64,000 nucleotides of DNA. It comes from Lepidodermella squamata. Lineage: Eukaryota > Animalia > Gastrotricha. A program made the position numbers and the translations under genes. Shown piece after piece: positions 1-39,574 of this stretch. Below the pieces are notes generated by a model. That model was not told the DNA's origin and did not search any database. It saw only the letters and a list, made by a program, of their open reading frames with translations. Each line of letters starts with the position of its first letter. Within the stretch, counting starts at the first letter, position 1. The stretch is from NCBI GenBank assembly GCA_047495785.1, contig JBLDXI010000009.1, positions 2,294,001 through 2,358,000 on the forward strand, written 5' to 3'.

Positions 1-1844
1 TGCCACCATTGGTGGGCTCGGTGATGTTTGCAACATGTGGAGCGATGCGCCGCAAACAACATGCGGGTCAGGGCTTACCTGCTGTAAGAACTTGAATTAT
101 ATAATTGCCTCGCTAAGATTTTTTTCATCGATTAGTCAAATGTCCCGAATCATACAAGAGTTCAGTCGTCCAGGCTAAATGTGTTTGTAAGTGCTTTATG
201 AATTAACAAAAGATGTTTCATTCACGAATAAATTTTCAGCCTACGATTTGCCATCGAATAACTGCCCAAGTGGGACTCGAACTTGTGGTTTCAACGCGGC
301 TTGTAAAGTTATTGGGGGAGTTCCTGTTTGCATGTGCACAAAAGCTGGCCATATTCTCGACAGCAACTTGGTATTTTTACCTTGTCACACGGAGTTTCAT
401 TACTCTATTATGCCTTATCGACAGATTGATTGCTACGGATGGACAGAAACTAAAGGCTCGTGCAATGCGACATGTGGAGCTGGTTTTTATGAAGTCACCC
501 GAACTTGCGAAAAGGCGAGTGGATCAAAAGCTGTGTGTCCGGGGCCTTCATCCTTTACCGTCGCCTGTTCAACCGGTGTTGAATGCCCACGTAATCTAAC
601 TTTTTATCGCATAACTGTGGGCTTTATTATTCATCAAAAACAGTGCCGAAGGAGCAGCTTTCTAAATCTGTTTTCCTGGAGGTCGTCACGAAAGTCATCA
701 CAGTTGATCTATTTGATAAATATTTGGAATCACCAGTGAGACGCGTAATCGCATCTGGCTTGACGACGAACTGCGTCAAAAACTCAACCGCGTTTGAAAA
801 TCAATGCTGCCCTGGAAAAGTGTGGGCTGCGGGTATCACAGATACTGACTGCATAGGCGTCTCCAATGTTCAGCTGATAAACAAGTTCTACGATGGTGGC
901 AGACTCAAATTCTACATTAGCGCGCAAAACAGCGGAACCAGCAAATGCTGCTCGAACGCTGCGGCGAAAATGTCACGCCGAAAACGAGCGACGTCAGTCG
1001 ATATCGACCAGTCTACTCTCGCCTCTGTTGTTTCGAGTCAATCAGTGTAAGTATCGATCAAATTGTTTGAACTCAATTTCATGACATCATTTTCCCCAGC
1101 GTTAATGATATCACCGGTGAAGTACAAAAAGTGGACCCCGATGGCAAGGTTCCTGGAAGCTCTATCATTATAGCCTCCGCGGTCACAACTGCCTCTCCGT
1201 CCACTGCTGCAGCGGCTGGGGCTAACTCAGGGGCTAATTCGGGATCTGGGGCTTCGACTACTAATGCTGCGTCAGCCGTCACAGCTCAGGCTGTTGGTAG
1301 TAGTGGTTCCTCATCGGTAACCGTTTCCCCCATTTTTTGCATCTTGTATTTACACATCTTCAATTTCAGTCCTCAAGTGGCGGATTGGAAGGGTGGGTTA
1401 TTGGTGTTATTGGTGGAGTAATTGGTCTTGTCGTGGTTGGGGCTGTAGTCGGAGTGATCGTTTTCTGCATCATCAAGAAAAAGTAACCAGGCTTTAATAC
1501 AGCCTTTTTGGCCATTATTACATTTTTCTCTCAGGAATTCTGGTAAGGTGGCAAATGCATCAGATCCACCAACCCCTTATGACCATATCCAAGAAAGTAC
1601 TGAGAATCACAAAATAGCGTCAGCCCGACCTACTACAGTCGTGCGACCGGGAACAGTTGTCCAGCCTGAATCTGGTCTCAGGCCAAGCACCCGAGCTTTT
1701 CCTCGATCTGCTAGGCCGGATGATCATATTGCACCTGGCGGCGAACCACCAAATCCAAACGACCCGAATTATCCTGCCTACTTCGGCAGATATCCGTCTG
1801 CCAAGCCTGAAGCTTTGGCACCACAGTCAGTGCATGGACATTGA
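1..1844 (+). CDS. Array gene A (5'-truncated by window edge): Cys module + EGF-like + TSP1 + SEA-like domain (RRKR) + S/A/T linker + Gly-rich TM + Tyr-motif tail
   Basis: Hand-spliced exons ~1-83, 136-186, 240-370, 425-590, 644-1046, 1100-1316, 1370-1481, 1535-1844 with GT..AG introns. EGF-like CGFNAACKVIGGVPVCMC, TSP1-like GW..CNATCGAG..R.C..C..C..C, TM GWVIGVIGGVIGLVVVGAVVGVIVFCII-KKK, tail ..PNYPAYFGRYP..LAPQSVHGH. Paralogous to genes B, C and D. Confidence 0.85.
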
Positions 1845-2184
1845 CACTAGATCAAGTTCAGTTCATATTGCGAGAATTCTTAATTCTATTCTTTCCTATC
1901 TTTCATAATCAGCTGATGCCGCTTTTCTATTAATTCATTCTTTTGTTGATCTCTATATTCAGCGTTATGAAGTAAAACAAAAAACGTTGCTTCGATCGAT
2001 TGCTGAGTTTTTTCTCATCGATATGGGTCACACCTTCACCTAGAACGGTTTGGCGCGTTGCTTCGCGTCAGCGATAAGGCTGGTAAACAGTGGTGCCGCA
2101 GCTTGCATAATGAAGTTTTGCAGTTCTCTCTAAAATCTAGGGGACATTTAATCGAGTCATTTTCTATCTCATGGAATTTTCGAG

Positions 2185-5100
2185 ATGAAAGTAACGTTGA
2201 AGATACTTTTCCTGCTTTTTAATTCGTTAGCTGTCATCGGTAAGCAGACTAAAGTCTGATAAACCCTATCACCAGAGATCACATTTTTTTAAACAGGTCA
2301 AGAGACAACAACTGTAGACTCCTCGGCGTTGATAGTTTGCCAGTACAATGACTGCACGGGGAAAGTCTTTCTCTCCTTCTCAGGCGGATATTTTCTTCAG
2401 CATTGCATGACCGCTGACGATACCATTCAGACTTGCGATACATCGACTGCAACCTTCGTTCCGCTGACAGATGCCAGCTTACCGAGCATAGCCTGCAAAG
2501 GAGATTACAAGTTCACCGTTCTCAGCACGGATTACTGGCTCGATGTCTATGACTTCAAGCGCTTTGATGGCACTGTCTGGGCAACTGTTGACTTGGGAGA
2601 GGCTTTCCACAACTATTTGTCGCGGCTGCGCGAGAATGAAGGTAAAATTATTTGATCAATTCACATCAAACTCAAAAATATTGCCTGATGTCAAGGAACT
2701 GGCTCATTTTACTGCAGCGCTCTAGTCAGCTCTACGCCTATAACCAGTACGACTGAGCTGAGTTACGAGAATGAAGTAGCTTGGTTCTACAATGGAAGTT
2801 ACTATGACATCGGGACTGACTCCACTGGTAACTTGGTCCAGCAGCCACAAGCTGTTGTGCAGCGTTTCTTGTACACCTACCCATACATCTCGCGAGACAT
2901 TGACCCCGCATGCGAATCCTCGGTGTGCTGCTGGTTCCAGGATGATATGCAGATCCTCTACAACGGGGAGTATCAAAATGTGCCTGCGGACTTTGTCTAC
3001 AATGGGACTAAGTGGCTAGTATGGGATAACGACCAATATAACCTGTATACAGGGGTATTCAATTGGGGGTAATTTGTATTTTCGATTTATTTCGGCGTTC
3101 ACAATTGAATTTCACAATAGGATTCTCGAGTGTTCCAACCACCTCTCGAACCTGGAGGTCTCAGATTCTGACGGGACTAAATACAAATTTATCAACGCAA
3201 CTCTGTGGGTTTTGGATAGCTCAGGAGAGCCAATCACTCTGGCGGCTCATGACATCCCATATTGGAACCTCGTCGACAGTGATTCGAGCGCTACCGGTGG
3301 CTATTACTACACACCAGATGAAGCGTCACCTGTAACCATGTGGAAAAATCACAGGTTTGTTCAACAAGCAGAAATGTTTAGACATTAAAGTAAAACCTTT
3401 CTCCCCAGTGGGATTTACTCTGTTTCGATTATCGATGGAGATTACGATTTCAAAGTGACAGACCAAACTACGGTAGCAATGACAGATGGTACAACTATCG
3501 GTGGAGATGAGACCTCGGCAGCTACAACAGCGAATGCAGCCACCACTGAGCCTGATTCAACCAGTACCCAATCCACATCTGAGCCTGATTCAACCAGTAC
3601 CCAAGCCACTACTGAGCCTGATTCAACCAGTACCCAAGCCACTACTGAGCCTGATTCAACCAGTACCCAAGCCACCAACCAGCCTGATTCAACCAGCACC
3701 CAAGTTACTACGCAGACAACGACACAGCCCAGTTCAAACACTGTCGCAACAGCAGCGACGACTACGACTCAGAGCAGCGCCACCTCCACAGTAACAGCCA
3801 CCACAGCAGCCCCTACTGCAACCACCCAGCCTTCTGAAACATCATCGACGGCAACCCAGGCCCAGACGACTCAGCCTACTACAACATCAAGTAGCACAAC
3901 TACCACTACTACCCCCACAACTACGACCACCCCAACAACAACTTCTACGACTACTACGACCACATCAACAACAACCACGACCACGACTACAACTACAACT
4001 ACTACTACACCACTGACGCCCCCTCCTTGCGTTTATGATGAAATGGATTTGGACCAGCCGAAAGATGCCGTATGCGCTGCACAGGCTGATGCGAACAAAG
4101 TCACTGGGATAACACTGTGCGATCCAAAAGATACAGAAGACGTTTGTGGACAGTATTACTACTGTTGGACGGTTCCCGACATTTTTGAAATGACGTGCTC
4201 TATGGGCATATGCCTTCCTGGTAAGCCACAATTCTCAATGACGAAATGATACTATTCTTAGTTTTTTTCTGAAAGCTTATGCAACTTTTTGCCCTGGGTT
4301 TTCGAATTCTTCGACAACGACTCAAGCTTCATCACTAGCGCGCAAACGTTCGATATTCAATTTTTGATTCAGCAATTTTAGTAATAACCTTTTCCTTTTC
4401 AGCATACAATTCGGCTTGCTCCTCGGACACCGAATGCTACACAGGGCGTTGCGATGGTGGGAAATGCTTATGTTCCTCTTGCACAAAGCTCCTCGCGGAG
4501 ATTGCATTCGATAAAATTCGAGGGGTTCCTTACTACCGCGAAAGATGCATTCGTATGTTCTCGTCTGTTTTGATTACCAGGGAATTAATCATTTATTTAA
4601 CAGCATCAAATAGCACGATTAATGAAGTTGGCGACACCTGCGATATGTTGAGCGATTCTCCGGCCAGCGCTTGCCAAACAGGCGCTACTTGCAGTTAGTT
4701 GAATGGTTTCCGTTTTGAATTTTCAAGCTGGAATATTTTTCTTGCAGTGAAGTGCCCGGAAGCATGGAAAAGTTCTGTCTTACCAGCAAAGTGCACAGGT
4801 ATATTGTCCTTTACCATTTTTTGATGTATTATCAGTTGTGAATTTCAGCTCTGAAAATCACAACGGCGGCCTGTTCCACTAATTCTTGCGGCTATCAGGC
4901 AGGGTGCAAAATGGTTGATGGAATATCTTTATGCACATGTACCAAGTCAGAATATTCTCTGGAATCAAATAAGGTGAGTTGATGATGATGATGCTGATGA
5001 ACCTCCTTATCCTGTTGCTTCACTAGATTGACTGCTACGGCTGGAATATTGTCAATCAAACAGAATGCAACGCAACGTGTGGCACTGGGTATTATCAAAT

Positions 5101-6388
5101 TACTCGAGTTTGCGATAAGAAATCCGGATCTAGCGCTGAGTGTGATGGCGACACTGTCATCTATGTCCCCTGCTCCGCAAGTGTTGAATGCCCCGGTAAG
5201 TGTTCCTCGATCCAGCTTTGATCTCCATAAACGATTTCAATCTTAGTACCGGCTGAGAAAAAATCGTCCGTAGTTTTGGTTGAAATTGAATCCAGAGTTA
5301 TCACGATTGAAATATTCGAGGAGTACCTCGAAAGCACCATCAAGTCTCTGATGGCATCTGCTCTGTCGACTAAATGCACGAATGACAGTGCCATGTTTGA
5401 GGGGCAGTGTTGCCCTGGCAAAGCCTGGTCTGCGGCTGTAGCTAAATACTCGGACTGTGTCAGCCAAACCGACGGTATCGAAATAATCAACAAATACTCA
5501 ACCGGCGAGAAGTTCAGATTCTACTTCAGCGCAAAAGGCGATCCAGCAAGCCAATGCTGCTCAACGGCGAGCGCAAAAACTCGACGAAAGAGAGCTGCTG
5601 ACTTTGATCAAAGCTCTTTAGCCTATATTATGGCGTCTTCGGGCGTGTAAGTGTATCCTAATCCAGCGTGACTAGACTTCACCCTTTGTCTTTGTACAGG
5701 CTCAATTCGTTTCAAACGGCGGTCCAAACTGTCGACCCTGATAGCACGTTGTCAGTTCCAGCAGCGACTACGACTACCGCGGCAACCACAACCACGGCAG
5801 CTTTAGCAGCGGGCGCGGCCACAAGCTCTGCAAGTGGAGGATCAGCAACTTCTTCTGTTTCCGCAACAACTACAACTACTGGCGTAGTTTCCGTCGCCCC
5901 TCAACAATCAGGTGGTAGTTCATCATCTTCGGTAAGACTTGCAACCAAAATAATTTGTAGCCGTTCCTTACCTTAATTTTCCCAAGTCTTCGGATGGCAA
6001 TGGAGCTCTCATTGGTGGTGTCGTTGGAGGAGTTCTAGGTGCCGCAGCGATTGGTGGAATCATCGGCGGCGTCGTTTATTTCATGAAAAAGAAGTAAGTT
6101 TCAAGCTAAAAATTACCCTTGAGTCACAATTATTCCTTTTTTATCAGGAATTCACCCAAAATATCGGATAGCAATAGGCCACCTAATCAAATCGCCACAC
6201 AGCGTATTTCTGAGGATACGATGATTAGAGGCCCCGCTCATGTCCCCATGGACCAAGATTCTCCTCGATTTATTCATGCGAATGTTGTGACGACGAAAGG
6301 GCCCCACCCAGAGTATCCATCTTATTACGGCCGTTACACTCAAGTTGGACCCAACAAGTCATTGGCCCCGACGCAGCCCTACGGCTAA
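2185..6388 (+). CDS. Array gene B: type I membrane mucin-like protein (signal peptide, unrecognised aromatic/Cys N-terminal domain, Thr-rich mucin, Cys modules, EGF-like, TSP1, SEA-like with RRKR, TM, Tyr tail)
   Basis: ATG 2185 gives MKVTLKILFLLFNSLAVIG (signal-peptide-like). ORFs 2329-2655, 2833-3072, 3074-3388, 3455-4249, 5276-5650, 5668-5976 and 6119-6388 join through short introns. TM ALIGGVVGGVLGAAAIGGIIGGVVYFM-KKK; tail PEYPSYYGRY..LAPTQPYG. Confidence 0.85.
3545..3709 (+). repeat. 33-bp coding tandem repeat x5 encoding (TEPDSTSTQAT)n mucin
   Basis: Unit actgagcctgattcaaccagtacccaagccact repeated about five times with few substitutions, followed by ACN-codon poly-Thr to ~4010. Confidence 0.9.
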
Positions 6389-7742
6389 TGAGAGCCTTGA
6401 AGGCGATGTGATCTTTCCGATGTAAAGAGATGACAGATCATTCTGAATGATTTACCAATATATCTTGCGGCAATCTCTTCTGGCTATAGCTTTACTCAAG
6501 ATATTCGCCCGGTGTTATTTTTGTTGCACTTTCTGAGTGTAAAAAGACTAATATAAGCTGACTCTTTTCTGCAGTGACATTTTCGAATAAATAATTTTTG
6601 TTCGGCATGTTTTGATTTGGCATGTTTCGAAGTATTATATCTTGCATTCGCATGTTGAAAAATACGACCAGGTGTTATCGAGACGAATTTCGACCCTCAG
6701 ACCGTCTGATTATTCGCAATTCGCAGGGTATATTTTTAAGCTCATGTATTATGCATGCTGCTCTATTTATTGGAATTTCTACATCGCATTCGTGACTCGT
6801 GACCTATTATTGTGTATCGCCTCCAGAATAAAATGCGGTATTAATGCTCTATCGGTGTTTGGAAATTCGATCGAATTGTCATTAATGTTAAAAACAAGTG
6901 GTATTGCCTTATCATTCAATTATCGAAATCGAAACGATTTTCAGGCCATGGGAAGGAGGATACAATTGAGAGGACTCATTGCCGAAAGGCTAAGCTAATT
7001 ATAACACTCGAGTTTGTGACCCATTGGCGCATCCTACAGCTAAAGGATTAGTTATCAGTTAGTTGCTGAACGCTACATAGATTCAAGTCAAATACTTATT
7101 TATTATTTTTTACTTCGTTGAGCTTAATCATGCCAGGTTATCGTCTATATTCATTGCTCAGGTGGATACTAACACTTATACCTCTAACTAATCCTTCTCC
7201 ATTTGCTGGTGCTTATGATTAAGATAAAGATATGATGCAGATGAGGGTTTCGATTTTTCGATAATTCGCTGGGAGATACATATTACGTCAGCAGGAGTTA
7301 TTTGATGAACATCCAAGTCTGTTGCTAATCAAACGTGGACCCGGCAACCCGGTGCATGTTGGATAAAGTTGGCGGTGCACCCATGCAGATCGCAATCACC
7401 CACGTGTAACATCGCATTTCCTGGCTACTCTCGCCTCAGCTGCTCTTCAAACTGTGCATCGACAATATCGCACCTGCGAACAACGCAAACAAGCCGTAGA
7501 GGTCCCTTATCGATAGTTCTTTATCGATCGTATGATCTTTCCAGAACAATGAATCATAATTTGTTTGGTGGAGGTGAAATAATGATTAAATTTGATTCTG
7601 GCATATTATACCTCACCGAAAGCTTATTGCTCTGTGCGTAGCAATGAAACGACCCACCAAGGGAAAGATAAAATATTCTGAAAGCGAGCCATAAATTTGC
7701 TTTTATTGATTCTCACCAAAGACAATTTATTGCCGATATCTG

Positions 7743-8403
7743 ATGGCTTCTTCTCTAACAAGCACCAAATCATTCAACTCCACAACGTTGGTTAGGAAAA
7801 ACTCTTTATTTTAGCTTGAAATAACGCTGATTTTATATATTTTATTAGCCCTCATCGAATAATAATCAAAACAGCGATTCTCAAATCGGGGCGATCATTG
7901 GAGGAACGATCGGGGGAATTGTCTTTATAATTCTTGCTGTTGGGTTAATTACTTACGCGATTTCATGGAAATCGTAAGTCAAAGGTCTTATATATTAACT
8001 CATTAAGAAAATTAATCAAAATTGCAGTAAGAGGCGAAAGGTAGCTGCTGGACAAACTGCTAAAAAGATGTTTGCAATCAAAGCGTTGGTTGCGGCTTCC
8101 AGACCAACTCGTCCAACTGCAGCTCGAATCGGCACGAGACCAGCAACGAGACCCATCATAGATCTACCGCAACCTCACTTTGAGTCGTCAGAACAACACG
8201 GAAACCCAAACAAAATGAAAGCTGCAACTCGTGTAATCATGCTTGGAAGCTCAATAACCTCGCGACCGGGTCAAGGTGTTGCTAACTACCCTCCGTCATC
8301 CGAACACCTGTTTCACGGTGGGAGCCAGACTCACTTCAATCCGTATTCCCAACCTGCTTTCGTCGAGCCAGTTTATGCTTCAGCGCCACCTTATGGTAGA
8401 TAG
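7743..8403 (+). CDS. Array mini-gene E: ectodomain-less TM + tail paralog (or alternative 3' exon pair of gene B)
   Basis: Exons 7743-7790 (MASSLTSTKSFNSTTL), 7849-7973 (PSSNNNQNSDSQIGAIIGGTIGGIVFIILAVGLITYAISWKS) and 8028-8403 (KRRKVAAG..RPTRPT..NYPP..PPYGR) are in phase. TM exon has the same phase 0/phase 2 borders as in genes A-D. AATAAA at ~8559. Confidence 0.65.
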
Positions 8404-8894
8404 GCCTCTTTATTTTTGCATCCATCTAGCGTTCTAGAATCCACCTAGAAGGCTCATATGCGATGTTTCCATGTTTCCATGTTTCGTATTCCCGATGTCC
8501 ACAGCGACTTTTTATACTCTCTACTTATTGTTATACAGACGAATAGTAATTACTTATTAATAAAATCATTCTTTCAGATGGAAGATGGCGTTGTTTGAGC
8601 CATTCTTCCACTATTTTTCTTTCAAGCGATCTCAGCCAACGGCTGTAGTCGCCCTGGCAGCTCTGTAAAATCAGCCAGAAAAAACCACTTGTTTATGTAT
8701 CGGAATTCGTTGAACGCGGTATGCTTACTTACGCTGCCTAGCAAATCATCATCGACAATATGAATTATTCAGCGGCTACAAGAAGAGGATTTCACCCTCT
8801 TGAAGGGTGTAGCACTTTTACGGCAAACAATTTCTCGGTTGTGTAAAATAATTTATTCTTAGCAGTGAAATCTAGCACGAGATCAGCAAATGAC

Positions 8895-11800
8895 ATGACG
8901 AAGGTAAGCCTCTCAAAGTCAGCATGGTTCTTCTGTTAAAGGCCTTCGTATAGGGAACATACAGAATCCTAATATCATGCGCCTTACTGAGCGCAATGAT
9001 ATCTTTGATTTACGGTGGGTAATTACGCTAACAGCTTTGATACGGTAAAACTGAGTTTCAACTCATTCAGGTCAAAATAATGTTACAACATCAGCTAACG
9101 CGACGGCATCGGCTACTACTACGTTAGCCGCGACCACAGTCAAGTCGAATACTAGTAAAAATCTTCACAACATGGATATATTTCTTTTTAAATTGTAAAT
9201 CTCAGCAAATACCAATGCAACTTCAAGCTCGGCTTCAAACTCTACGTCCACGAGTTCGAATTCCACATCCTCAAATGCTGCAAGCTCGAACAGTTCTGCC
9301 ACTGCAGCTGCAGGTAATTACTGCGAATGATAATTTAATGATCTATCAGATTCTCCCTCTTTCTTAGCTAACGCTGGTGAGTTGACGGCTAGCGAGTATG
9401 ATTTTTATACCTTATTTTCTGTTGAAAGCAACGACTGCAGCTACAACTGCGGCTGCGGCTGCAACTACAGCTGCGGCTGCGACTACAGCTGCAGCTGCTG
9501 CTACAACAACAGTCGCAGCAACGACACAAGCCGCGACTACAACAACAGCAGCGACAACTACAACTACAGGTTGATGGGTCTCACGTTGATTGCTATACTT
9601 ACCGAAGATTATTTTACCAATAGCTTCATCGTCAGATGGCACCCCTGTGAAGCCAACAAAGGTATACTGCGGCAACACAACATACTGCAATGGGACAGGA
9701 TTCACTGACAGCTTGGGCACAATTTATTGCATTACCAGTGATCTTCAGATACAAGAATGTGATCCTGATACAGAAGATTTCGATCCGGTTGCTGCGGGCG
9801 CCTTGGCATACTTGCCATGTTTTGGAAATTTCACATTCACTGTTTTGAGCACCAAGTTTTGGCTGAAAGACATCTACCTGCTCAAACACAATGGGGTGAA
9901 ATACGTCTATACTACCTGGCCGTCTTTGGATTCAATGACCAGGTACTTGTCGCGATTGAGGCAAAATGAAGGCTCGGGGTGGTTCTATTGCGCCGCTTCG
10001 GTTTACACAAAGCTTAATAACGGCACATACACATCAACGAAAACCGTTGCTTTCTACTACAACGCAACGAACTATTACGATGTAAAAGTCAACGCTTCGG
10101 GTTACTTGACGTTGGCTACTCAGGAAACTAAACAATCAGCGCTGTACACTGTCCCATTCGTCACCAAGGACATCGACGGTTGTGCCTCGACAGTCTGTTG
10201 CTGGTTCCAAGATACTTACAATGTTTCTAGTACCGAGAAAGGCGTCACTGATTTCGTGTTTAATGGCACGAAGTGGACTTACTACGTTAGCAACGCCTAT
10301 ACCGTCTACACGGGTGATTTTAACTGGGGGTAAGGATGCATTCCGTTAACTTGGATTAGCTTAGATTTTGGATATAATTTTTTATTCAGGATTGCGAGCT
10401 GCGCTGCTTATTTGTCTAATTTCGCTTACAAAATGGCAAATGGTACCAAATACAAGTTTGAAAATGGATCTGTTTATCAGACAACCAGCAGTGGAGCCGT
10501 AACAGGGCCTGCTAGAGTTGATACTAAGCACGATGAACTGATCGACTCCGATCCTTTAGCCAGTGGAGGCTATTACTTCACTTTGCCATCAAGTACCTGG
10601 GGCATGTTCAGAAATCAGAGCGGCAATTACAGCAGCACTGTCAAGAACGGAGACTTCTCCTTGAGCAAAGTTCCTCCCAGTTGTACCGAGGGTGGTAAAA
10701 GGCTGTGGCAGAACGCGTCTCCAAGATGTACGGCGTCCACCGATGTGATCAGGTTGACGAGAAACATACCTTGTGATCTTCAAGAATCTCCTAGTATCTG
10801 TGGGACTGGTTACAAGTGCATACCTATACCCACGGTGTTTAGCATATCATGCAGCATGGGCTTTTGCATGCCTGGTAAGCTACGAAATTTCGCTAACCTC
10901 TGATAATCGGAACTATGTATAGATTATGAAAAATGCACGCCAACGACTACAACTTCTACTACAACTACTAGTACAACAACAAGCACCACCACCACTACCG
11001 CGCCTACGACCACAACAGCAGCTACGACAACAGGAGTAACAACAACTGCTGGCACGACGGCAGCCCCCACGACAACCCGTCCGACAATTACCGGCTTGCA
11101 AAGTGAGTTTTTGTATGGTTTCATGTTGCTGGCTCAACCAAAACCTGACTATCATAGAATATGGGTCATATTGCTACGTTAATTCTGACTGCTTCACCGG
11201 CCTTTGCGTCAACAACACCTGTTCTTGCTCTTCGTGCTCTCAAATTCTTGCTGGTTTCGACTACGATTACACGAAATCGTCGCTGTACTACGTCGAACGA
11301 TGCATCCGTAATGACTTTATCTTTACTTCGGGAATTCATTTTAAATTTTTCATAACAGCGAGTAACAGCACAATTGGTGGTCTGGGTGACACTTGCGATC
11401 TCTGGGCCGATATGAAATCAAAAGCCTGTGGCAATGGGCTTGTTTGTGGTATGTGCGTCATAAATTCTTGGTTATCGTGGTTCAAGTTTGTTGTTACTTA
11501 AGCTAAATGCCCGGAAGCGTGGAAGAGCTCAGTTACCCCAGCGAAATGCGTTTGTAAGTTCTTAACAAGGGTAATGTGCCTATCTTCGAAACCGATTTAC
11601 TATAGCTCTGAACATCTCTTCATCTTCATCATCGGAAACTTGTCCATCGACTTATTCCTGTGGATACAAGGCTACATGTAAAATGATTGGTGGAGTACCC
11701 GCATGCACTTGCACTTCTGCCGGATACGCACTTGAGTCGAACGGTGTTGATTGCTACGGCTGGAGCATTACCAGCCAAACCACTTGCGGAGTCACCTGTG

Positions 11801-13326
11801 GCAACGGAGCGATAACAATTAATCGAGTTTGCGACAAAAAGAACTCGTCCACCGCTGTTTGTTCGGGCAATACTACCCTTACCCAGTCTTGCAAAGCTGC
11901 ATCTGCCTGCCCTCGTAATATAGTAAACCTTCTTGAGATCCCTAATAATTATTTTTGATTAATCACAGTACCGGCCGAAGCTTTGCCTGCTTGTGTGCTC
12001 ATTGAAATCACCTCCAAAGTGATCACTGTCGACATTTTCGAAGGTTACATCGAGTCGCCCATCAAAACTCAAGTAGTTACAAGTCTTAACTCAAAGTGTA
12101 TCAACGACAGTTCAACCTTTGAGGGGCAGTGCTGTGTAGGGAAGGCTTACTCTTCTAGCATTACAGCCACAGACTGCATCAATCCTACAACTGGAGTCAC
12201 ATTTCTGAACAAATTCAGGTGAGATTAGTGGAGACAGTGTAGCGATTTCTAAGATGTATTTATCAGCACTGGAGAGAAGTTCCAGTTTTACATGATGGCT
12301 ACAGGCGACAAAACCAGTGATTGCTGTTCAAAAGCATCGGCCAAATCAAGTCGCAAAAAGCGAGCTGCATCAAGTGGAGCTTTTGATCAAAGCATTTTGG
12401 CTGCTATCGTCTCCGGAACTACTGTGTACGAAAGGAGTATTGCGATATTACTATAATTTTTGTGAAATATTTTTCATTAGGATGGACGCGATCAAAACAG
12501 CGGTGAAAAATGTAAGAGCCTGCCGAATCGAATTATTGTTATGATTATCGAGCAATTCTGTGATAGGTCGATCCTAGCGCTGTTATTCCAGCTGATGCTG
12601 TTTCTATTGCAACAACTACAACAACGACTACCACTGCGGCAACAACCTCGAGCAGTTCTGGTTCTGGATCCGCTGTGGCAGCGGCTGTTGCGGTAATTTA
12701 GAAACTGCCTCACTGAAGCATTTTAACTAATTGCGACTTCCTTTATTATAGACAGCTGCTCTGGCTGTGTGGGTGTACTACGCAATTGGAGGTGGCTTAG
12801 GCGGATTGGCGTTGATAATCATTGTTGTCGTGATTATTGTGGTGATGCAGAAAAAGTACGATTTCTCGCAAATTATATCTCCCACCTTAATTTGTGCCTT
12901 TTCAGGAAAAATGCAGCTACCAAAGTTGCAGCATTCCCACAGGACCCGAATGATCCCGGTGTTCGACCCATGGTCAATTTACAAGTACAGCAGGGTGGCC
13001 CAGCAATGGCTCATGGTCACCTAGAACCAGTCGCTGGCTACAACCAAAGCGCCGTTGGCTACCATCAACCCCAAAACGGAGGGTATGGTGAAAATGCTGC
13101 CTACGGGGGTCAAGATGCAGCCAATGCGTACCCTCAGCAAGGCACGTATGATCAAGCAGCTTTCGACTACGCCAGCTACTACGGTCAACAGGCTGCCTAT
13201 GACCCTAATGCTGCAGCTGCTTACGGGCATGCGGGTGCCGCCCCTGATTACCCACCATATTACGGCCATTATCCGCAAGCTGCGGATGTACAAGCGATTG
13301 CTCCTCAGCCAGCTCATGGCTATTGA
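8895..13326 (+). CDS. Array gene C: type I membrane mucin-like protein, same architecture as gene B
   Basis: Spliced start MTK|GTYRILISCALLSAMISLIYG|QNNVTT (signal peptide), several small S/T/A exons, ORFs 9590-10333, 10412-10903, 11103-11501, 11683-11958, 11983-12222, RKKR at 12352-12363, TM VWVYYAIGGGLGGLALIIIVVVIIVVM-QKK, tail 12906-13326 ..PDYPPYYGHYP..IAPQPAHGY. AATAAA at 13491. Confidence 0.85.
9430..9570 (+). repeat. Low-complexity coding repeat (Thr/Ala mucin tract of gene C)
   Basis: Repeating acgact/gcagct/gcggct codon pairs encoding TTAATTAAAAATTAAAATT. Confidence 0.75.
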
Positions 13327-13709
13327 AAGGAGTATCCATTATATCAAACCTAGTCCCATTTTATTATCCCGATTGGCTGAATAGCCCGTGATTATTAAGG
13401 CTGACTTGCATACACCATTGCAATATTTTGCGGTCCTTGACCTTTCTTTGCAGTAATATTTTTTTCTGTTTAAACTGTGCTGTGAATTACAATAAAATGT
13501 GATAACTCAAACTTGGTATAATCTTCTTATTTACGACTTCTTATGTATGGAAAAACCTGCTAACAAACAACTTATATTGGCGGTGTTTGTTTGAAACGTG
13601 TTTGTTTTGAGGTTTTCATTTCTGCTGTCACGTCGTCGCAAACAAGTAAACTCAGTGGCTGCAATGAATACTGCGAAATTATGATAAATTCCTATATATC
13701 TAATATACG

Positions 13710-16700
13710 ATGATCGTGTTCAAATTTCTGGCTTATCTCTCCTTTCATTCTGCATTTTGCCAAAGCCGAATCAAGTATTTTAAGAATTTCGAAATCCCGG
13801 CTACAACAATTTGGCCTTTGTTCGAAATAACCGAAGAATCAACAACCCCAACTACAACAAACTCGACAGAGGAATCGACCACTGTTAGGGAAATCAGCGA
13901 AATCCACCCAAGAGGTAGCGATGGGGCGAAATCCTTCTTCCTAGGGATGGATTTCAGCTTCCCACATTGCAAACCATCCGCCTGTCACGGCTTAGCGTTC
14001 GGTTACCAATACAAAAGCTGTTTACGATCGGATTACCAGCTTCAGGAATGCAAATTCGAGATAAGGACCAACACGACCTCGAAATGGTCCTACCAGCCGT
14101 TGACTTGCCTGAAAGCTGTATCAAGCGTGCCATGCCATGGCCATTTCAACTTCTCAATCCTATCGACAAGATATTGGCTCAACAGCACGATATTACTTGC
14201 ATGGAGTGGTTCAAACTGGAAGAATGTAGATATCTCACCCTACACGTATTACCTCGCCCGTTTGAGACCTAATGAAGGAAACGGGAGTTTGTATTGTACA
14301 GGGTTTCGATCACCCTCTAGCAGTTTGGTCTACAGCGCTTTTAGCTATTTTTACAATGGTAGTTACTACGAGTTATCTACCGATAACGGAGGCTATATGT
14401 ACAAGGCTAAAATTATCGATGATAGCGGGTATAGGAAGTTGGCCTTCTTCACGAGGAATGAAACTGGTTGCCAGAATCCGATGTGTGTCTGGTTTCAGGA
14501 TGAATACACGGCCACACTGCCGAATGGAACTGTCTCGGCTGAGTTGACAGAGTTCAGATATTCAAATAAATGGTTCGTATGGATTGCGGCGGAAAATAGT
14601 TACATCTTGTACACGGGTCCTGTAACAAAGAGGATGGCGCAGAGTTACGTGAAATACTTCTCCGACTACACATGGACTTTGACGAATGGAACGACTTACA
14701 GTTACATCAACGGAACTGTATTTCGGTTGGATGACGACGGCCAGCCGATTCGAAGTTGGTCTTCTATCGGGCTGTGGTGGTGGAATTACTGGGATTATAC
14801 AGCGTGCGACCCGCAAGCCACCGGTGGCTACTTCTTCACGTACCCAGGGTCAGATCGAACAGTTTATCGTAACAGCAGTGGAGAGTATGATTGCTCGATA
14901 AAAGATGGGGAATTTGAGTTTCTCAAGCAATACGAAACCGAGCATAAATGCAACGACTCGGCTGAATCAAGTGGCAACGGTCGGAAATTCTGGTCTTGCA
15001 ATGCAGCGGCCGACCAACCCGGTGATAATACCTTGTCTGGTAATTTAAATTAAATAAATTTCGATTATTTTTTATTTCGAATTTTTCTTCAGTATGCGAT
15101 CCTGAGGATGAATTCTCTTGCCCGCAAGGCTTTCGATGTGTCAAATTTCCGGAGGTGATTGAAAAAGTATGCAGCCTAGGCATCTGTATGTCCCATGATT
15201 CACCCAACTCCACTTACCAACCCTTGCTAAGTGAGTTTTTTCCACTCATTTATTTTTCATTTTTCAACCAACTTTCCTGCAAAATAAGAATACGGCGAGG
15301 TTTGTGAGCAGCATTCGGATTGCTTTACTGGGCTATGCCTTGATGGTAAGTGCTCATGTTCGAGGTGTACGAAAATTCTGTCTGCAATCGATTACAACTG
15401 GATGACGTCAAGCTATGAATACAAAGAAGCGTGCATACGTATGTTTTTCCGAATTGCTAACGCGTAGGTATATTAATTGAATTTTTTATGAACGTCGCAG
15501 CTATTAAAAGCGCGATCGGCGGGCTGGGTGATTCATGCAGCCTTTGGCCGATAGCTAAAGACAAGGCCTGCGGGCATGGTATGGTATGTTCTAAGTGCCC
15601 GGAGCATTTCGATATACCGATGATTGACGCAACATGCAGTGGTAACAAAAAATAACTTGAAATTGATGAAAAAAACGAGGCAAATTTTTTATAGCTTTGA
15701 AACTAGTCGACTGGAGCAGGTGTGAAGATGGCCACAGGTGTGGTTACAATGCTAAATGCGCTGTTATCGGTAATGTCTCTACCTGCATCTGCCCAGATGG
15801 TTACAATTTGGAGTCGAACATGGTTGATTGCTACGGTTGGAGGCCGTGGAGCGAGACGCCCTGCAGTGCAACTTGCGGCAATGGCGTCGTTCAATTAAGC
15901 AGGATTTGCGACAAATTGCCCCATTCATCAGCTGCTTGCGATGGGAATGCAACAGTGCTTGCACCATGTTCCGCAGCAGTTCCTTGTTCTTGTGAGTAAC
16001 CGCGAAAATTTCCGCATAATTTCCCATATATAGTCATTTTTAGTGCCACCCTCCTTAAAAAAATCAGCAGCTCATGTGAGAGTTCAGACAAAATCATTGA
16101 AAATGAGCCAGTTTGACGCGATTCTGCAACCTCAGCTGAAAAATTCTCTGGCAGAATTTCTCACTGATATGTGCCTTCAAGATAGTGATATTTTCGAAAA
16201 TCAGTGCTGCCCTGGGCGAGCTTGGATTTTCCCGCATGAAGCTTACGATTGCGTCAGCAACACTACGGGAATAATATTTGTCAACAAATTCAGCGACCCT
16301 GATCAGTCATCTTTCAGCTTTTACGTAACGGCGCAAGTCGATCAGAACAGTATATGCTGTAAAGGGGCTCCAGTGATAAGCGAAGATTCGAGCAATAGGA
16401 AGCCGAAGAAGACTGTAAAGATAGCTTCAAGCTTCGATGCAGAGATTCTGAGCGAACTTCTCGCAACTTCGAAGCAAATGTGAGATTTACCTTGTTATAA
16501 GGCTTTATATCAATTTAATGTGCTTTCAGGATGTCGACTTTAACTACGATTTTCAAAAAAATTGATCCAAAGTCAAAAATATTAATCATGTCAAAAAGCG
16601 TCGAGTCAAACCGCGATCAAGTAATTAAAAATTCCTCCTTAATTTTTTAAATTTTCGAATTTTTTACAGAAATTTTCGCACAGCGCGAACGATTTTTTTC

Positions 16701-17061
16701 TGTCCGCAAGTGGGATTCTCATAGCAATTACAGGCGCTTTGTCGGCGATTGCTATTTTAGCCATGACTGCATTGCTCTTCAAAAAGTTGGTTCAAAACTG
16801 AAATTTTACGATGAAAATTTGAGTTTGATTTTCAGGAAAACTTCGAGGACTTCGTATAAATTCAACTCATCGAACGAGCCCATTTTCAGTTTTGCCAACA
16901 TCTGCGGCTGGCGGCGCCGAGGTTCATCTACTGCTGAAGTCACGCCGAGCCACCCTGACATTCCGATTATCAACGCGTTCCATCCCACCTACTTCGAGCA
17001 GTATCGGCCGAAAAAAAGCAGCGTGCGAAAATCATCAGCTCTTTCCCTGAACCAACTCTAG
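13710..17061 (+). CDS. Array gene D: divergent paralog with intron-poor 5' half, short mucin tract and no furin site
   Basis: ORF 13710-15053 has a signal peptide plus the shared motifs CHGHFNFSILSTRYWL, YLARLRPNEGNGSLYC, CVWFQD, ATGGYF. Later exons give YGEVC..DCFTGLC, EGF-like/TSP1 (15697-15999), SEA-like (16043-16483), TM ~16695-16785 FFLSASGILIAITGALSAIAILAMTALLF-KK, tail with HPTYFEQY. AATAAA at ~17092. Confidence 0.82.
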
Positions 17062-17376
17062 AGGACAGTTAATTCTGTTTACGCGTATTTCAATAAATTG
17101 ATAAAATGTTGACTATAGACCCTTGGATTGTGTGGGTGAAACCTGAAATGGGTCAAGCATATAATGAACCTCGTGATGTTACTCCTTGGAAACTGCAAAG
17201 TTGTAGGAGGTTCAGCCGCCACCTCGTGTCGTCGTTAAAATTCTGGCTAAAAGCCTCTAATGCACTCAGCTTTGTGTTTTTCATTTTTTTGGTCGCCCGT
17301 TTGTTTTTTTTGGCGGTTGCATAGAGGTCATATCCACTGGGATTGCGCTACTAAAGTTGAAATTCCTCAAAATAAA

Positions 17377-18454
17377 ATGATCATGAAACACATCGCATCA
17401 ATATTACTGTTTTTTTCGATGAAAGCCTTGGCAACGGGTAAGAATATTTTGATTCAATAACTTGGCGTAATCCTAATCAACCACAGACCCAGAGATGTAT
17501 GCATCGAATGATCCGGATGGCTCAACGTAAATTCTTTTCCAGGTTTTTTGTGAATAAACCTCAATTTTTTTTATTTCACCAGCGCCGGGAATGTAAATGA
17601 GGAGAAAACCACAGTAAGCTAATCTACCATTTTTTATTTCCTGGTTATGATTTTTCCGCAATCTAAAAGCGATACATCCTTTCGAGAACAATGCCACCTG
17701 AGTAGGTCTCGAATTTGAAAAGTGGGTTCTTAGTTAAATTTGTTTTTGTTTCAAGAATCGCGAAGTTGAAAGCTGCTATGGAGAGTGGAGACGAGGACGA
17801 GGTTGCAAGGTTCCTATTTGGCCAAGAGATCACCACGGTATAGGACCGTGTAAAATGTTGAAGCATTATTTAAAAAAATATTTTTATTAGAAAAAAGACG
17901 TGAGTGATGGATCCCTGCCATCCTGGGCTATCGGGCTTATGAGTGCTTGTATCATCATATTTTGCGCGGTTTTGCTCATCGCCACGGGAATAGTCGTCGT
18001 CAAAAAGAAGTTCGCCTAATTTATCAGTTTAATTTATAAAAAGTCTATACCCTTTCCTCATCTATCAGCAATCATCCCGCTAAATTCCGTTTTATATCCC
18101 AGGTTGAAGATGAAAAGGTCGAAAGTTTCCTTTGTACCGCCTCCGATGGGCAACCTGCCAACTCATGATCAACTGATGAAATTTCAATACCAGCGAGCTG
18201 CAACAAGTCGAGATGGCAATAAGGCTTTAATCGCCGTTCAGGCTAAGGAATCAGCCCTGCCAAAATCAGCCCTGCCTTTGGCCGATAATCGATCTCAGCC
18301 GATTTTTGTCACTCAAACCGGGCACAGTGCTTTATCGGCTAGCTGGACAGCAACTGAAGCTGGGGTTCAGCGCGAAAAATCAAAAGCTGAACAGTTGATA
18401 CTTCCTCTAAGTGCAGACCCTTCGTTATCGCTGCGCAACTTGCACTTCAGCTAA
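17377..18454 (+). CDS. Array mini-gene F: small type I membrane protein with short ectodomain
   Basis: MIMKHIASILLFFSMKALATG signal peptide, several micro-exons (boundaries uncertain), TM exon 17891-18009 KKDVSDGSLPSWAIGLMSACIIIFCAVLLIATGIVVV-KKK with the same phase 0/2 borders as the other array genes, tail ORF 18104-18454. AATAAA at ~18492. Confidence 0.65.
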
Positions 18455-19436
18455 TTTCATATCTTATAATCAACTTGTATTTTTGAAGTGAAATAAAGTT
18501 AGTAATTTTTAACGATTTATGCAAAGATCACGGCTTTTATTTTTTTGCAATAAAAAATTTTCTGGCGACATTTATCATCAACAAATCGCACAATAAGCTT
18601 GCGCTAAACGCCGTTGGTAGTAATAATTCTTGTTATAATACAATAAGTTGTAAGTTTCAAGCGAGAAAGAATATATAACATAGGATTTGTGTCTTCTCAA
18701 GAATTTTATTTTCCATGGCTTTTCGCAATAATTTTTGCGACTAGGTCGCTGTTCAATTTTAAATTCGGCGAAAATCAATCATAGCACTTCGTCAAGCGGC
18801 TAAGTACGCCGAATTAAACAATACAATAGTAAACAATTACATTGCTAAAAAATCACGAAGGCTATATACCAGCGAGGTATAAGCAATCGATATAGGATAA
18901 AAATTCGATATTTACAACAGTCATTGTCATAATTATTTAAAGATTTGATTGAGGCAAAAAATAGTCAGCTGTTGATATCTGGCAGAGAGTTCGGCATGGT
19001 AGAGACACGCAATAGAAACACGCTGCTAGAAACGAGACTCTAATCAATAATATACCGAGATCAAGTTTTAGCGAAGTCAAAAAGATCTGCAGATTTCACA
19101 TGGCATTTAAACACCTCGAAAGCGGTAAATAAAAACGAAAATCCGATTAAATTTCACGGCCAAGTTCTTCGAGAATATTCATTCCTAACATCCTTAGTTC
19201 ATTAAGATTAACTTGCTATTAAAGGAAAAATTAATAAATCTTCAAAGGCCTAACGAACCTTAGATAATTAATTAAAAATTCTTATCATTAATTTCGATAT
19301 TTTAATAAAAATCTAAGAAAATTTCTAGAATTAACTGGCCAATATTATAAATTTCAGAGACATTTTTGCCATATATTCTGACGAGATTTTTCGATGGGAG
19401 ATCTTAGCGAGTAGTAATTCCATCTTGCCGTGATCG

Positions 19437-21315
19437 TTACCGCCGGAGAAGTAGCAAAATAGCCCCCAATACTAGACTTGTTGTCCTTGAGCAAATCCCG
19501 GCGCCATTACTGCTGGTCGGCATTGAAACATCGCTATCGGCCAGGTTACGTTTCCGCTTTTTCAGCGAAACCAGGGTGATCGGATTCGACGGCATCTGTT
19601 GCACCCCAGCAGCCGCGGCACCCATCGACGGTATAGCATCGCGCGGCGCATGGGCCACCTTTTGAAACAGCTTGCCTTCATCAGGCTGGCGGCGCTTCGA
19701 CGACGAAATGCCGGCCGAAGCGTTCCAGCGCGAAAATAATACGCAATTCTGCTGTAAAATCGTTTTAGGCTTTTTCGGAGGCGTAGACCCATTTGTAGCG
19801 CTATCGGTTGATGGTACCATTGTAACCTCAGTCCTCATTAGGAAAAAGTAAGAACAGTGTTGGTCTAGGGTGCAAGCCCTGCTGCAGGTTGCTTCGGACG
19901 AGTTGGCAATTGTCGCTCGATGAACGAGAATTTTCATCGAATCATCTGCGACTGCTACGTAATCTGCTCCCTCGCTCGGATTCGCTGGAAAATTTAAGAA
20001 ATATTCGAATTAGTTTATTCCAGCCAAAAGACTTACAGTAAGCTTCCCAAGGATCGTTCTCTCCAAGAGTCGACGAAGCGTAGCTTTGATGCATAGCTGC
20101 CGATGGCGAGTTGCTATTGTCGAAAAACACCATTTCCAGCGGGTTCGTTGTATTTTGATCCACCAGCACCGGCTGGTCGCGCTGTTGTTGGTCAAATGAG
20201 AAAATTTCATTGCTAGACATCGCCGGGTCATCGCCTCCGTCAAGGTGCTTCCGCGCCCGCTCGAGAGCGGCCGGCACCCAGTAGTCCTTACGGAAGTATT
20301 TAACCCAGGATTCGACTGCTAGCAAATCGCTAGGCATCGTTTCTGGGCACACCTGGGCCTTCAGATAACAGACGTCGCCTTCAAAGTCGTAAGTAAACCC
20401 GGAACAGTTAGCCATTGTCCGGCATGTTGATGCGCAGGATGTAACGTCGGTAAAAACTGGCGGTACTGCCAGTTGTCCAGGACATGAACCATGCATAGCA
20501 GTAAATCCCCATAATTCTAAAAAATTAAAAATAAATTATAAAATATCCCTGAAATTAAGAGCAATTTTTCTATGAATTTTGACTAGTGGACCGGGTAAAA
20601 TGGGACATTTTAGGCTTTCTGACTCTGTTCCTCATTTTCTTCAAACTTCGGCCCCAATTTTAAGAGCAATTTTAGAAACTGAGGGGGCCTTCTATATAAT
20701 AAGCTATACAATAAGCTTCCAAAATAAACCGCTGATCGTTTAATAACGTTATCCTATAGCACATTTCAAATTGCCAAAAATAATAAAAAAATTGAACAAT
20801 TCTCGATTTTTCCAGAAATATCAGGATTCATCTTCCCCGCCTCCAGTTCAAATTTTAGAATTTTCTAAAAATACTGAAATATGGCTCTGTCCAAAGTTAC
20901 CCTTCTATTACGGTACCCGGATTTTTTTCCAAAATTAATATAATTATTTTCCAACAAATTTACCATTTTTATAAAACACCACTGGGGTGTATCGAGCAGG
21001 TTTGATGCGGTCGCATAGGCCCCATTTTAGCCAACAATGCTGTTCAAGGTGATCAAAGGAAAACCCGCGACAGCCCGTATATCTCTGGCATTCATTCGCA
21101 CAGCCTTGTACGTCAACGGTAACTGGTTTCTCGTTTAAAAACATATCGGCGCAATTGCCGATCAGCATAGTAAATCCGCGAACAACTGTAAAAATATTTA
21201 AAAAATCACAGGAAATTAAAAAGCTCACTTCAAACTTACGAGGTCGCTGGCATTTCGCAAGGCTCGACAGGTAGACAAGGACGAAAAGCGCTGGTCCCAA
21301 CCTCTGAAGCATCAT
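19437..21315 (-). CDS. Secreted/GPI- or membrane-anchored protein with three PAN/Apple domains
   Basis: Signal peptide MMLQRLGPALFVLVYLSSLAKC; PAN signatures CANECQRYTGCRGFSFD..CWLK, CASTCRTMANCSGFTYD..CYLK, CSRACTLDQHCSYFF..CVLF; KKRKR followed by hydrophobic C-terminus SSNGAG..SLVLGAILLLLRR. Confidence 0.85.
20590..20915. mobile_element. Degenerate non-autonomous DNA-transposon remnant in PAN-gene intron
   Basis: gggtaaaatgggaca (~20593) and tgtccaaagttaccc (~20888) are imperfect inverted repeats; right end ..ttacggta resembles the CCGTA termini of the other MITEs here. The intron is much longer than the local ~50 nt norm. Confidence 0.35.
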
Positions 21316-37781: not shown

Positions 37782-39283
37782 TTACGCGAGCGAGTTCCAC
37801 TCGGCGAAAATGTGGTTAACATTCGAAAGGATAGCCAGATGGCTAAGGACTGAATTAACGACCAGTTCCGTTAGTTTCAGCGACTCGAACGTGTACTTCC
37901 GATTATCGTCGACAAAGTAACTCGAGTATGACGGATCCATTGCGGAATTTAGACCCTGACCATGCAACATTGGCTGTTGCCGATGCGTCGCATGGGTGAC
38001 CAAATCCATTCCTAACAGCAGGTGATGTTTTATTTGCGCGAGCCGCGGTATCGCGTCTGCTTTTTCTAGAGAAAAAATTGGTGGAAACGATAAGACGAAT
38101 TATATTAAAATTTACCGTTGAAAAGAATTAAAGCTAAAAGGATAGCACTGTGGATGAAGTTAGGACTCCATTCTTCAATAGTTGCGTCCAGTTTCTCACA
38201 AAGTTCCCATGATTCCTATATTATGAAAAAAACCGCCTTAAATTTAATTCGAATCGAATTTTCTTTTTTTACCTGGAAGTGTGGGAAAACTTCTAGAAGT
38301 TTATTTTTAAAATGAGCGTGAACGCCGAAAAATGAGCCGTGGCTAGCACCTGCGACTTTATTTTGGAAAACGGCCCCAGATTTTGCTGCAAATCCACTCC
38401 TCAGGACATTCAGCTCATGTGGTGGAATGTTGAAGCGATCTATTCCCAAAATTAATCATTTTTTTCATAGCGGGGTGAAAAATCAACTTATACCTGCGAT
38501 AAAATTGCAATATTTCGAGGCAAACTGGACCCCTTCAGTTATATGAGCTGTGGTCTTAGTTATAATGTGCTTAAAAGACATCCAAGGTGGTATATCAGCA
38601 GCTCTTGAAAGTGGCAGCTGGAAAAAACGTTGAAAAATTGAATTTGATCAAAAATTGAACTTCAAATACTCACATGATGATATCCGTGTAGAAACGTGTA
38701 GGCTTGAACAACGGTTCGAAGGACATTTTCAACATCACTTCCTTCGAATAAAACAGGATCGCGAACCAATGTGAGGGCATTTGGTGATGGGAAGGGTAAG
38801 GACACTTCGGAGCTATTTGAGAAAGATTCGCTGGAATTAACATCCATAGCTGAGCTCGATTCGATATTCTGATTAGGCTTCGGCCATTTTCGCATCGCTA
38901 ATTGCCTGCCTATAAATCGAAAATTCGATGAAGTTGTTAAAAATTATTGATTTTCGCCAACTTGTCATGCCAGCTTCCAAACATTTGTGGAATCGGCACT
39001 TGGCGCAGTACCTCCGAGATGATTTATCGATGACGCATTGGTTGTCACCCTGGAGACATTTCAACGAGTCGCGTTGAGAGCAATAACGCCGAAAAAATTT
39101 CTATAAAAATCAGCTGTTTTCTTCCGATAATTTAAGGCTTAATCCTTACTTGACAGGCTTCGCAAACGTTTTGGTAGTACCCTCTCCTGGGTTTTACAGG
39201 AATTTCACAGACCTACAGGTAGCTTGATTATTAAGGTGGTGAATCAGCTAAAATTGATACGCACTTACCTTGCAAAGTTTCAT
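37782..39283 (-). CDS. Divergent nuclear hormone receptor NHR-A (CEACQ P-box) with degenerate LBD
   Basis: Spliced MKLCK|VCEIPVKPRRGYYQNVCEACQ|KFFRRYC..CLQGDNQCVIDKSSRRYCAKCRFHKCLEAGM (C4 zinc fingers); helical C-terminal exons ending HIFAEWNSLA. Confidence 0.85.
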
Positions 39284-39574
39284 GACGCTGCGTTATAACG
39301 AAAAATGACGGTTTCGTGCTCTGCTAATCGTCAAGAATACAAAAGCAACCCCGAGATAAGATATATTATCAAAGCTTAGGGGCGCAACGTCCGCGCTAAA
39401 GGTGCAAGATAACCTGCGCCAATTACCGCCCCTTTTATAGCAATACGCGTGACTTAAGCCTTAGGACATGGGATCAAAACACGGAAGGATTGTCTATTTG
39501 ACCCAATAAAATTGCCATTTATTTCAGCTCTTACGACATGCTATTCGCAAATAGAAAAAAAATAGTTTATTAAA

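Follow-up and report, generated by a model that had tools for sequence, protein, structure and literature searches.

A lineage-restricted, tandemly expanded family of candidate type I mucin-like membrane glycoproteins in the genome of Lepidodermella squamata

A general design for cell-surface proteins, in which an O-glycosylated stalk is followed by a SEA-like juxtamembrane domain with a furin site, a transmembrane (TM) segment and a cytoplasmic tail, is known from KIAA1549, Notch, MUC1 and ADGRG6 (PMC13570299, PMC12038025). Furin processing occurs inside the SEA-like domains of KIAA1549 and Notch (PMC13570299), furin sites are present in some SEA domains, and the FBox, MAD and SEA folds have been linked to one another (PMC12038025), with MAD12 characterized as ferredoxin-like and as resembling Nup54 (10.1101/460097). 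Here, we analyze a tandem array of four large genes (A to D) and two mini-genes in a 64,000-nucleotide stretch of the Lepidodermella squamata genome (contig JBLDXI010000009.1, hereafter C9; C9:2294001-2358000 in genome coordinates), the whole of which is referred to as the window. We place a probability of roughly 0.6 on the reading that these genes are members of a family, restricted to one lineage and expanded in tandem, of about 23 type I TM mucin-like glycoproteins, with a likely role in adhesion, recognition or a protective coat.

Organization and distribution of the gene family

Gene structures were read from the stop-to-stop translation of positions 1-19500 of the window, and searches were conducted exon by exon rather than with joined full-length proteins. 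The array comprises four large genes on the + strand, with short introns of approximately 50 nt and GT..AG ends: gene A, present as its 3' part only (1-1844), gene B, full length (2185-6388), gene C, the start of which is uncertain (about 8977-13326), and gene D (13710-17061). The original prediction, made from the letters of this DNA, had proposed that four large paralogs share a common module order, and this was borne out by a phmmer scan using modules taken from genes B and D. The order is an N-terminal (head) domain, Ser/Thr/Pro tracts, three modules designated CysA, CysB and CysC, an EGF-like module, TSP1, a juxtamembrane alpha/beta domain, the TM segment and a Tyr/Pro tail. The Ser/Thr/Pro-rich tracts lie before or after the head domain, and further ones separate the juxtamembrane domain from the TM segment. 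In genes A, B, C and D as well as in both mini-genes, the introns that flank the TM exon are of phase 0 on its 5' side and of phase 2, within the K/R cluster, on its 3' side, confirming the common TM exon structure that had been proposed, with the phases derived from RNA joints for gene D and mini-gene 2 and from prediction for genes A, B and C and mini-gene 1.

Pfam scans of exon translations, together with the 18 head-domain rows of an alignment (A1), returned nothing but TSP_1 and weak EGF matches once a lone HTH_ABP1_N match (E 0.003, below cut-off) had been rejected as spurious. TSP_1 (PF00090) scored 35.8 bits in gene D and 23.8 in gene C, above the cut-off of 21.6, and 21.5 in gene B and 17.4 in gene A, below it. 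EGF_3 reached 13-19 bits against a cut-off of 28.5, and the cysteine spacing was EGF-compatible by eye. The head domain, the Cys modules, the juxtamembrane domain and the tail exons of both mini-genes had no Pfam match.

The array had been presented as six genes, an extent that did not hold: there are 11 full-length tandem paralogs and two more clusters, giving about 23 copies. Cluster 1 (C9:2.259-2.311 Mb) contains the 11 full-length tandem genes, the last 4 of which fall in the window, and the N-terminal part of gene A was located upstream at C9:2292.3-2294.0 kb, outside the window as anticipated. Cluster 2 (C9:3.30-3.34 Mb) contains about 9 genes on the minus strand, and cluster 3, on contig C73 (C73:0.207-0.230 Mb), contains 3. 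Queried genome-wide, the head domain of gene D produced 30 exon-level matches and the juxtamembrane domain of gene B produced 26, the latter read as about 23 genes, all in these three places apart from one weak match on contig C13.

To determine the distribution of the family beyond this genome, the A1 head profile was compared with 1.84 billion representative proteins, among which it drew 5 matches, all of them unnamed open reading frames (ORFs) that come either from Logan contigs or from a single ENA metagenome assembly, and none in an annotated proteome, supporting the earlier proposal of a lineage-specific family. The two longest metagenome scaffolds (L024 and L025) display the same module order, the tail motif described below and a tandem cluster, and they share about 70-73% nucleotide identity with this genome, found only in a conserved gene flanking the C9:3.3 Mb cluster. 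This level of identity implies that the scaffolds derive from a related species with conserved synteny. The flanking gene is of the Somatomedin_B/SBSPON_C type (L024:18541-19762) and adjoins the left side of the C9:3.3 Mb cluster too, indicating that the position of the cluster is conserved between the two species. For the C-terminal half, the metagenome relative itself was all that emerged from word-index protein searches, whether the query was a 383-aa single-exon ORF or a 3-row profile (A4), and 449 pattern matches to the juxtamembrane profile among JGI metagenome contigs yielded 0 confirmed relatives.

Some copies outside the window have unusual layouts. Two cluster 2 paralogs on the minus strand (C9:3307703-3314912; L021:408-2057 and L021:5281-6888) each carry two complete tandem head domains, both within one long exon (open frames of 616 and 544 aa), implying that the head behaves as a mobile module. 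Two other minus-strand copies (C9:3320700-3325999, offsets 22.7-28 kb in cluster 2) are apparently head-less, with very long Ser/Thr tracts (e.g., a 349-aa open frame), and may be either head-less variants or decayed copies. In cluster 3, a single 383-aa exon (C73:207122-208270; L026:622-1770) encodes CysC, EGF, TSP1 and the juxtamembrane domain, and a loop of the latter is interrupted by a Thr-rich tract of about 60 residues.

Within the window, the portion of gene A that is present begins with CysC (2-83), followed by the EGF-like module (about 257-373), TSP1 (about 419-586), the SEA/MAD-like juxtamembrane domain with an RRKR site (640-1046), a Ser/Ala/Gly-rich stalk (1100-1316), the TM exon (1370-1482) and the tail exon (1535-1844). 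Gene B, for which the exon borders are predictions based on reading frame, GT..AG sites and homology to paralogs, opens with a signal-peptide exon (2185-2239) and three exons for the N-terminal domain (2297-3354), and continues with a mucin tract of 11-aa repeats (3455-4010), CysA (4040-4220), CysB and CysC (4403-4693), a mini-exon encoding CPEAW (4748-4798), the EGF-like module (4849-4973), TSP1 (5027-5195), the SEA/MAD-like domain, again with RRKR (5247-5646), the stalk (5700-5931), the TM exon (5987-6093) and the tail (6148-6388). Gene C has an N-terminal mucin tract (9055-9570), an N-terminal domain in two segments (9636-10329 and 10390-10720), CysA up to 10874, a mucin exon (10923-11102), CysB and CysC (11158-11448), the CPEAW exon (11503-11553), EGF and TSP1 (11606-11914), a SEA/MAD-like domain with RKKR (11969-12218 and 12267-12423), a stalk (12567-12692), the TM exon (12752-12855) and a tail containing YPPYYGHYP ... 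APQPAHGY (12906-13326). Exon 1 of gene D (13710-15039) encodes a signal peptide, a short Thr tract and the N-terminal domain, and it is followed by CysA (15093-15230), CysB (15289-15438), CysC (15501-15641), EGF and TSP1 (15695-15991), the SEA/MAD-like domain, with NRKPKK and no R-x-[KR]-R (16044-16479), a non-mucin linker (16530-16620), the TM exon (16670-16785) and the tail (16836-17061).

Predicted structures of the head and juxtamembrane domains

The head domain, of approximately 330 residues, was modeled by AlphaFold from a paralog-only alignment as an all-beta structure (pLDDT 86, pTM 0.80), and pLDDT ranged from 75 to 86 across all five head models. The A1 profile had no match to PDB sequences at E up to 10, and with the model itself there was no domain-level match by Foldseek against the PDB (best E 0.003, TM-score about 0.1) or against BFVD viral structures, and nothing usable by shape in the ESM Atlas (TM-score at most 0.29). 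Searches of the ESM Atlas by features were likewise fruitless. Only small pieces of the head aligned, as single four-stranded meanders resembling propeller blades, and internal repeats detected by hhalign reached a probability of 47% at best and were not accepted. Based on these whole-domain model searches, the head may represent a new fold, and a confidently modeled domain of this size that matches no sequence or solved fold makes an attractive subject for structure determination and for a search for ligands. Divergence among the paralogs is mainly in this domain, with a mean column identity of 21% for the head versus 39% for the juxtamembrane domain.

The juxtamembrane domain was also modeled well (pLDDT 87), with a layout of beta, long kinked alpha, beta, beta, alpha that corresponds to a ferredoxin-like alpha/beta sandwich. 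The best structural matches were PCDH15 MAD12 (7.7), the CELSR1 FBox region (7.4), Nup54 (7.1) and CDH23 MAD28 (6.3), with sequence identities to the matched chains of 6-21%. The description of this domain as SEA-like therefore stands at the level of fold, but not at the level of the Pfam family or of autoproteolysis: the SEA profile (PF01390) had no match in the juxtamembrane exons at E up to 1 (genes A and D) or up to 5 (genes B and C), and the G/S-V-V-V autoproteolysis motif was absent from all 15 aligned juxtamembrane rows. A profile from the juxtamembrane alignment (A2) likewise had no match to PDB sequences at E up to 10, and the ESM Atlas yielded nothing for this domain.

Two CC pairs are conserved in the domain. 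A convertase-type site, R-x-[KR]-R, occurs in 11 of the 14 aligned paralogs, with the minimal R-x-x-R in 2 and none in gene D (N-R-K-P-K-K), confirming that gene D lacks the site. In the model, the basic site falls in the loop after strand 3, between the strand at 94-102 and the last helix at 127-137. A cut in this loop would leave the helix packed on the sheet, so that the two halves would be expected to stay associated. At least 8 loci with a P_proprotein convertase domain were found in the genome.

The cytoplasmic tail contains the motif Y-P-[PAS]-Y-[YF]-G-[QRHN]-Y-P, followed about 15 residues on by a C-terminal A-P-x-x-[HY]-G-Y. Paralogs from each of the three clusters have this motif, as does the related species. 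Some copies of it fit PPxY. The tail of gene D keeps only P-T-Y-F-E-Q-Y-R-P.

By sequence and structure prediction, then, the all-beta head of about 330 residues is carried above O-glycosylatable Ser/Thr/Pro tracts and is connected through three Cys-rich modules, an EGF-like module and one TSP1 to a ferredoxin-like domain of the SEA/MAD/FBox class, a second short stalk and a single TM segment. In the model that we favor, the head would bind a ligand or partner. A furin-type convertase would cut the R-x-[KR]-R loop during secretion, and the cut ectodomain would be held non-covalently, as in Notch S1, KIAA1549 and SEA-cleaved mucins, from which state it could be shed. The tail motif may recruit cytoplasmic adaptors or sorting machinery.

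Much of the same evidence could be read in terms of a purely structural coat, in which tethered mucins form a glycocalyx or apical matrix on an epithelium, the head acts as a matrix cross-linker and the tail serves only in sorting or endocytosis. The long Ser/Thr/Pro tracts, which vary in length and position and in the C73 paralog even occur inside the juxtamembrane loop, fit this account, as do the large tandem copy number and the combination of EGF and TSP1, which is typical of matrix proteins. However, conservation of both the head and the tail motif from one species to the other suggests specific partners over bulk coating, and gene D has almost no mucin tract. We consider a structural coat unlikely, if a serious contender.

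RNA evidence, mini-genes and alternative readings

To evaluate the predicted gene structures, we made use of a public run (X1) from a strain approximately 3% diverged from the window. Contigs from X1 lack eight intervals, each 49-54 nt long and bounded by GT..AG, and none of these joints was found in a second run, X2, the kind of which is not recorded; the presence of the joints in X1 and their absence from X2 imply that X1 contains spliced RNA. Five of the introns of gene D were confirmed in this way (15641/15695, 15991/16044, 16479/16530, 16620/16670 and 16785/16836), and the last five exons of the gene form one open frame from EGF to the stop codon. The proposal that the segments are joined as modeled is accordingly substantiated by RNA contig joints for the 3' half of gene D and for mini-gene 2, while for the other genes it is a prediction. 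Over 13574-15487, X1 RNA contigs cover none of gene D exons 1-3, with coverage comprising 65 nt of exon 4 and the last five exons. Possible reasons are that coverage is low, that the head has diverged further in the X1 strain or that a shorter isoform is made; since contigs cannot show transcript starts, the gap is uninformative with respect to isoforms.

Comparison of the EGF, TSP1 and juxtamembrane exons of gene D with the X1 RNA contigs revealed 19 synonymous differences and 1 nonsynonymous difference (20 listed), and comparison of exon 1 with the X2 contigs revealed 8 synonymous and 3 nonsynonymous differences (11 listed). The predominance of synonymous differences implies that gene D is a constrained, working gene. 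Gene D is expressed and under purifying selection.

Several points weigh against the reading of the family as mucin-like membrane glycoproteins. The RNA covers only the 3' half of gene D and mini-gene 2, with contigs that stop short of the N-terminal exons of gene D. Homology to SEA is unproven, given the lack of a Pfam SEA match and of a G-S-V-V-V motif, and the cleavage, the glycosylation, the position at the cell surface and the ligand are predictions. Moreover, the C-terminal half was searched with length- or word-limited tools, and distant relatives in annotated proteomes could be missed.

The two mini-genes, both on the + strand, lie within the array. Mini-gene 2 (17383-18454) encodes a small type I membrane protein and is supported by spliced RNA contigs together with loose contig ends. 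It consists of a signal-peptide exon (17383-17437), ectodomain exons (17487-17526, 17583-17613, 17670-17701 and 17756-17837), a TM exon (17891-18009) and a tail exon (18103-18454). The mini-genes had been described as ectodomain-less, and for mini-gene 2 the RNA joints contradict this, since they connect the signal peptide to an ectodomain of about 85 residues. The family juxtamembrane motif L-x-x-W-[AVI]-I-G is present at the outer membrane edge of mini-gene 2, and its tail has no significant similarity to the family. Mini-gene 1 (7743-8403) is predicted to comprise a 16-codon Ser/Thr-rich first exon without a signal peptide (7743-7790), a Gly-rich TM exon (7849-7973) and a tail exon ending in ...APPYGR (8028-8403). 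It has the Gly-rich helix and the C-terminal ...APPYG ending in common with the family, its similarity to the TM exon of gene B reaches a phmmer E of 0.0045, and it could be the remnant of the 3' end of a paralog.

As a further measure of relationship, a profile was built from 13 family TM exons, including those of genes A-D and leaving out the mini-genes, and searched against 1639 open segments of the window. Genes A-D ranked first, followed by mini-gene 2 (E 0.019) and mini-gene 1 (E 0.57), ahead of everything else. Kinship of both mini-genes with the family is probable as judged from position, intron phases and these weak TM-exon profile scores.

These results bear on the signaling system originally proposed for the locus, in which full-length sensors, a non-cleavable gene D and ectodomain-less mini-genes acting as modulators or decoys would operate in the manner of paired or decoy receptor clusters. 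It is true that gene D lacks the convertase site and is nonetheless expressed and constrained, that the mini-genes sit inside the array with common intron phases and TM exons that rank directly after those of the family, and that the Tyr-rich motif of the tail has been kept from cluster to cluster and between species. However, mini-gene 2 has its own signal peptide and ectodomain, an unrelated tail and weak homology to the family, mini-gene 1 is a prediction without RNA support that may be a remnant, and most of the approximately 23 genes have no adjacent mini-gene. Nor did Pfam scans of the two mini-gene tail exons detect any kinase, phosphatase, ITIM/ITAM or death-type module, and the tails of the long genes, outside these scans, are by eye short Pro/Tyr-rich stretches. 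The sensor, decoy and modulator scheme is therefore unsupported, and we regard a signaling system of this kind as decidedly unlikely.

A more ambitious version, in which a new head fold with a specific ligand is coupled to Notch-like proteolytic or mechanical signaling, such that convertase-primed heterodimers shed the head in response to force or ligand binding, the tail signals, gene D is uncleavable and the mini-genes tune the response, appears highly unlikely. Gene D, as a natural paralog that is predicted to be uncleavable, could provide a built-in control for the role of cleavage. Least probable is a set of fast-evolving recognition receptors (immune, symbiont, pathogen, or mate/gamete) in which tandem duplication diversifies the head, for although the family is confined to a narrow lineage, the head is its least conserved module and some paralogs have two heads and some none, the strain or allele comparison of gene D points to purifying rather than diversifying selection.

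The lineage in question is also not the one implied at the outset. The original prediction implied a nematode host, and we rejected this affiliation: genome searches conducted without a positive control found no SL1 (Pfam/Rfam), no cuticle-collagen N domain (Col_cuticle_N) and no Str chemoreceptors, TTAGGC repeats were not found in the genome, and TTAGGG repeats are abundant, contig ends included (752 matches versus 2 in the control). A search of the genome for arthropod cuticle proteins was blank. Separately, at least 150 loci encoding the nuclear-receptor zinc finger zf-C4, scored among 438 candidates, were found genome-wide, including a dense block of about 45 loci at C54:2.52-2.67 Mb and another group inside the window at 37782-47349, an expansion that is very large for a non-nematode animal. 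A 505-aa open frame resembling a Helitron/Pif1-type helicase (C9:2252101-2253615, minus strand; L023) lies a short way upstream of the array's first gene.

Comparison with known systems

The original prediction described the architecture of these genes as unrecognized. This remains apt insofar as no named relatives were found and the head has no match, but the overall design is of a known membrane-mucin kind. Among its nearest counterparts are KIAA1549 and Notch, which are also type I proteins with a large glycosylated ectodomain, a basic site in a SEA-like juxtamembrane loop, a TM segment and a tail (PMC13570299). In contrast with KIAA1549, which has three SEA-like domains, members of the family have one, and in contrast with Notch, they have no LNR or ankyrin modules; there is no sequence homology to either, and cleavage here is only predicted. 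PCDH15 MAD12 and CDH23 MAD28 are membrane-adjacent, as is the juxtamembrane domain of the family (10.1101/460097; PMC12038025). The family domain differs from the MAD and FBox domains in being preceded by TSP1 rather than cadherin repeats, in having no sequence-level match to them at the low identities given above, and in carrying two CC pairs and a convertase site, the latter being absent from the CELSR1 FBox according to the CELSR1 paper. Unlike the SEA domains of MUC1, MUC16 and related mucins and of ADGRG6/Gpr126, the juxtamembrane domain of the family has neither a Pfam SEA match nor a G-S-V-V-V motif, and relative to these proteins the family has an extra head domain, the Cys modules and a TSP1 repeat.

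Dystroglycan resembles the family in having a globular N-terminal domain, a mucin-like region, a SEA-like processing domain, a TM segment and a tail rich in Pro and Tyr that carries a PPxY-type motif at its C-terminus. No homology between the two was found, and the family tail motif, Y-P-P-Y-[YF]-G-x-Y-P, conforms to PPxY in only a subset of paralogs.

Among invertebrates, surface glycoproteins have commonly expanded within single lineages, and the family described here does not amount to a new kind of system. Rather, it is an undescribed and strongly expanded family of surface proteins in a poorly studied animal lineage, and it appears to be a separate, sequence-unrelated instance of a recurring design in which an O-glycosylated stalk is combined with a SEA/MAD-like domain that is predicted to be cleavable by a convertase.

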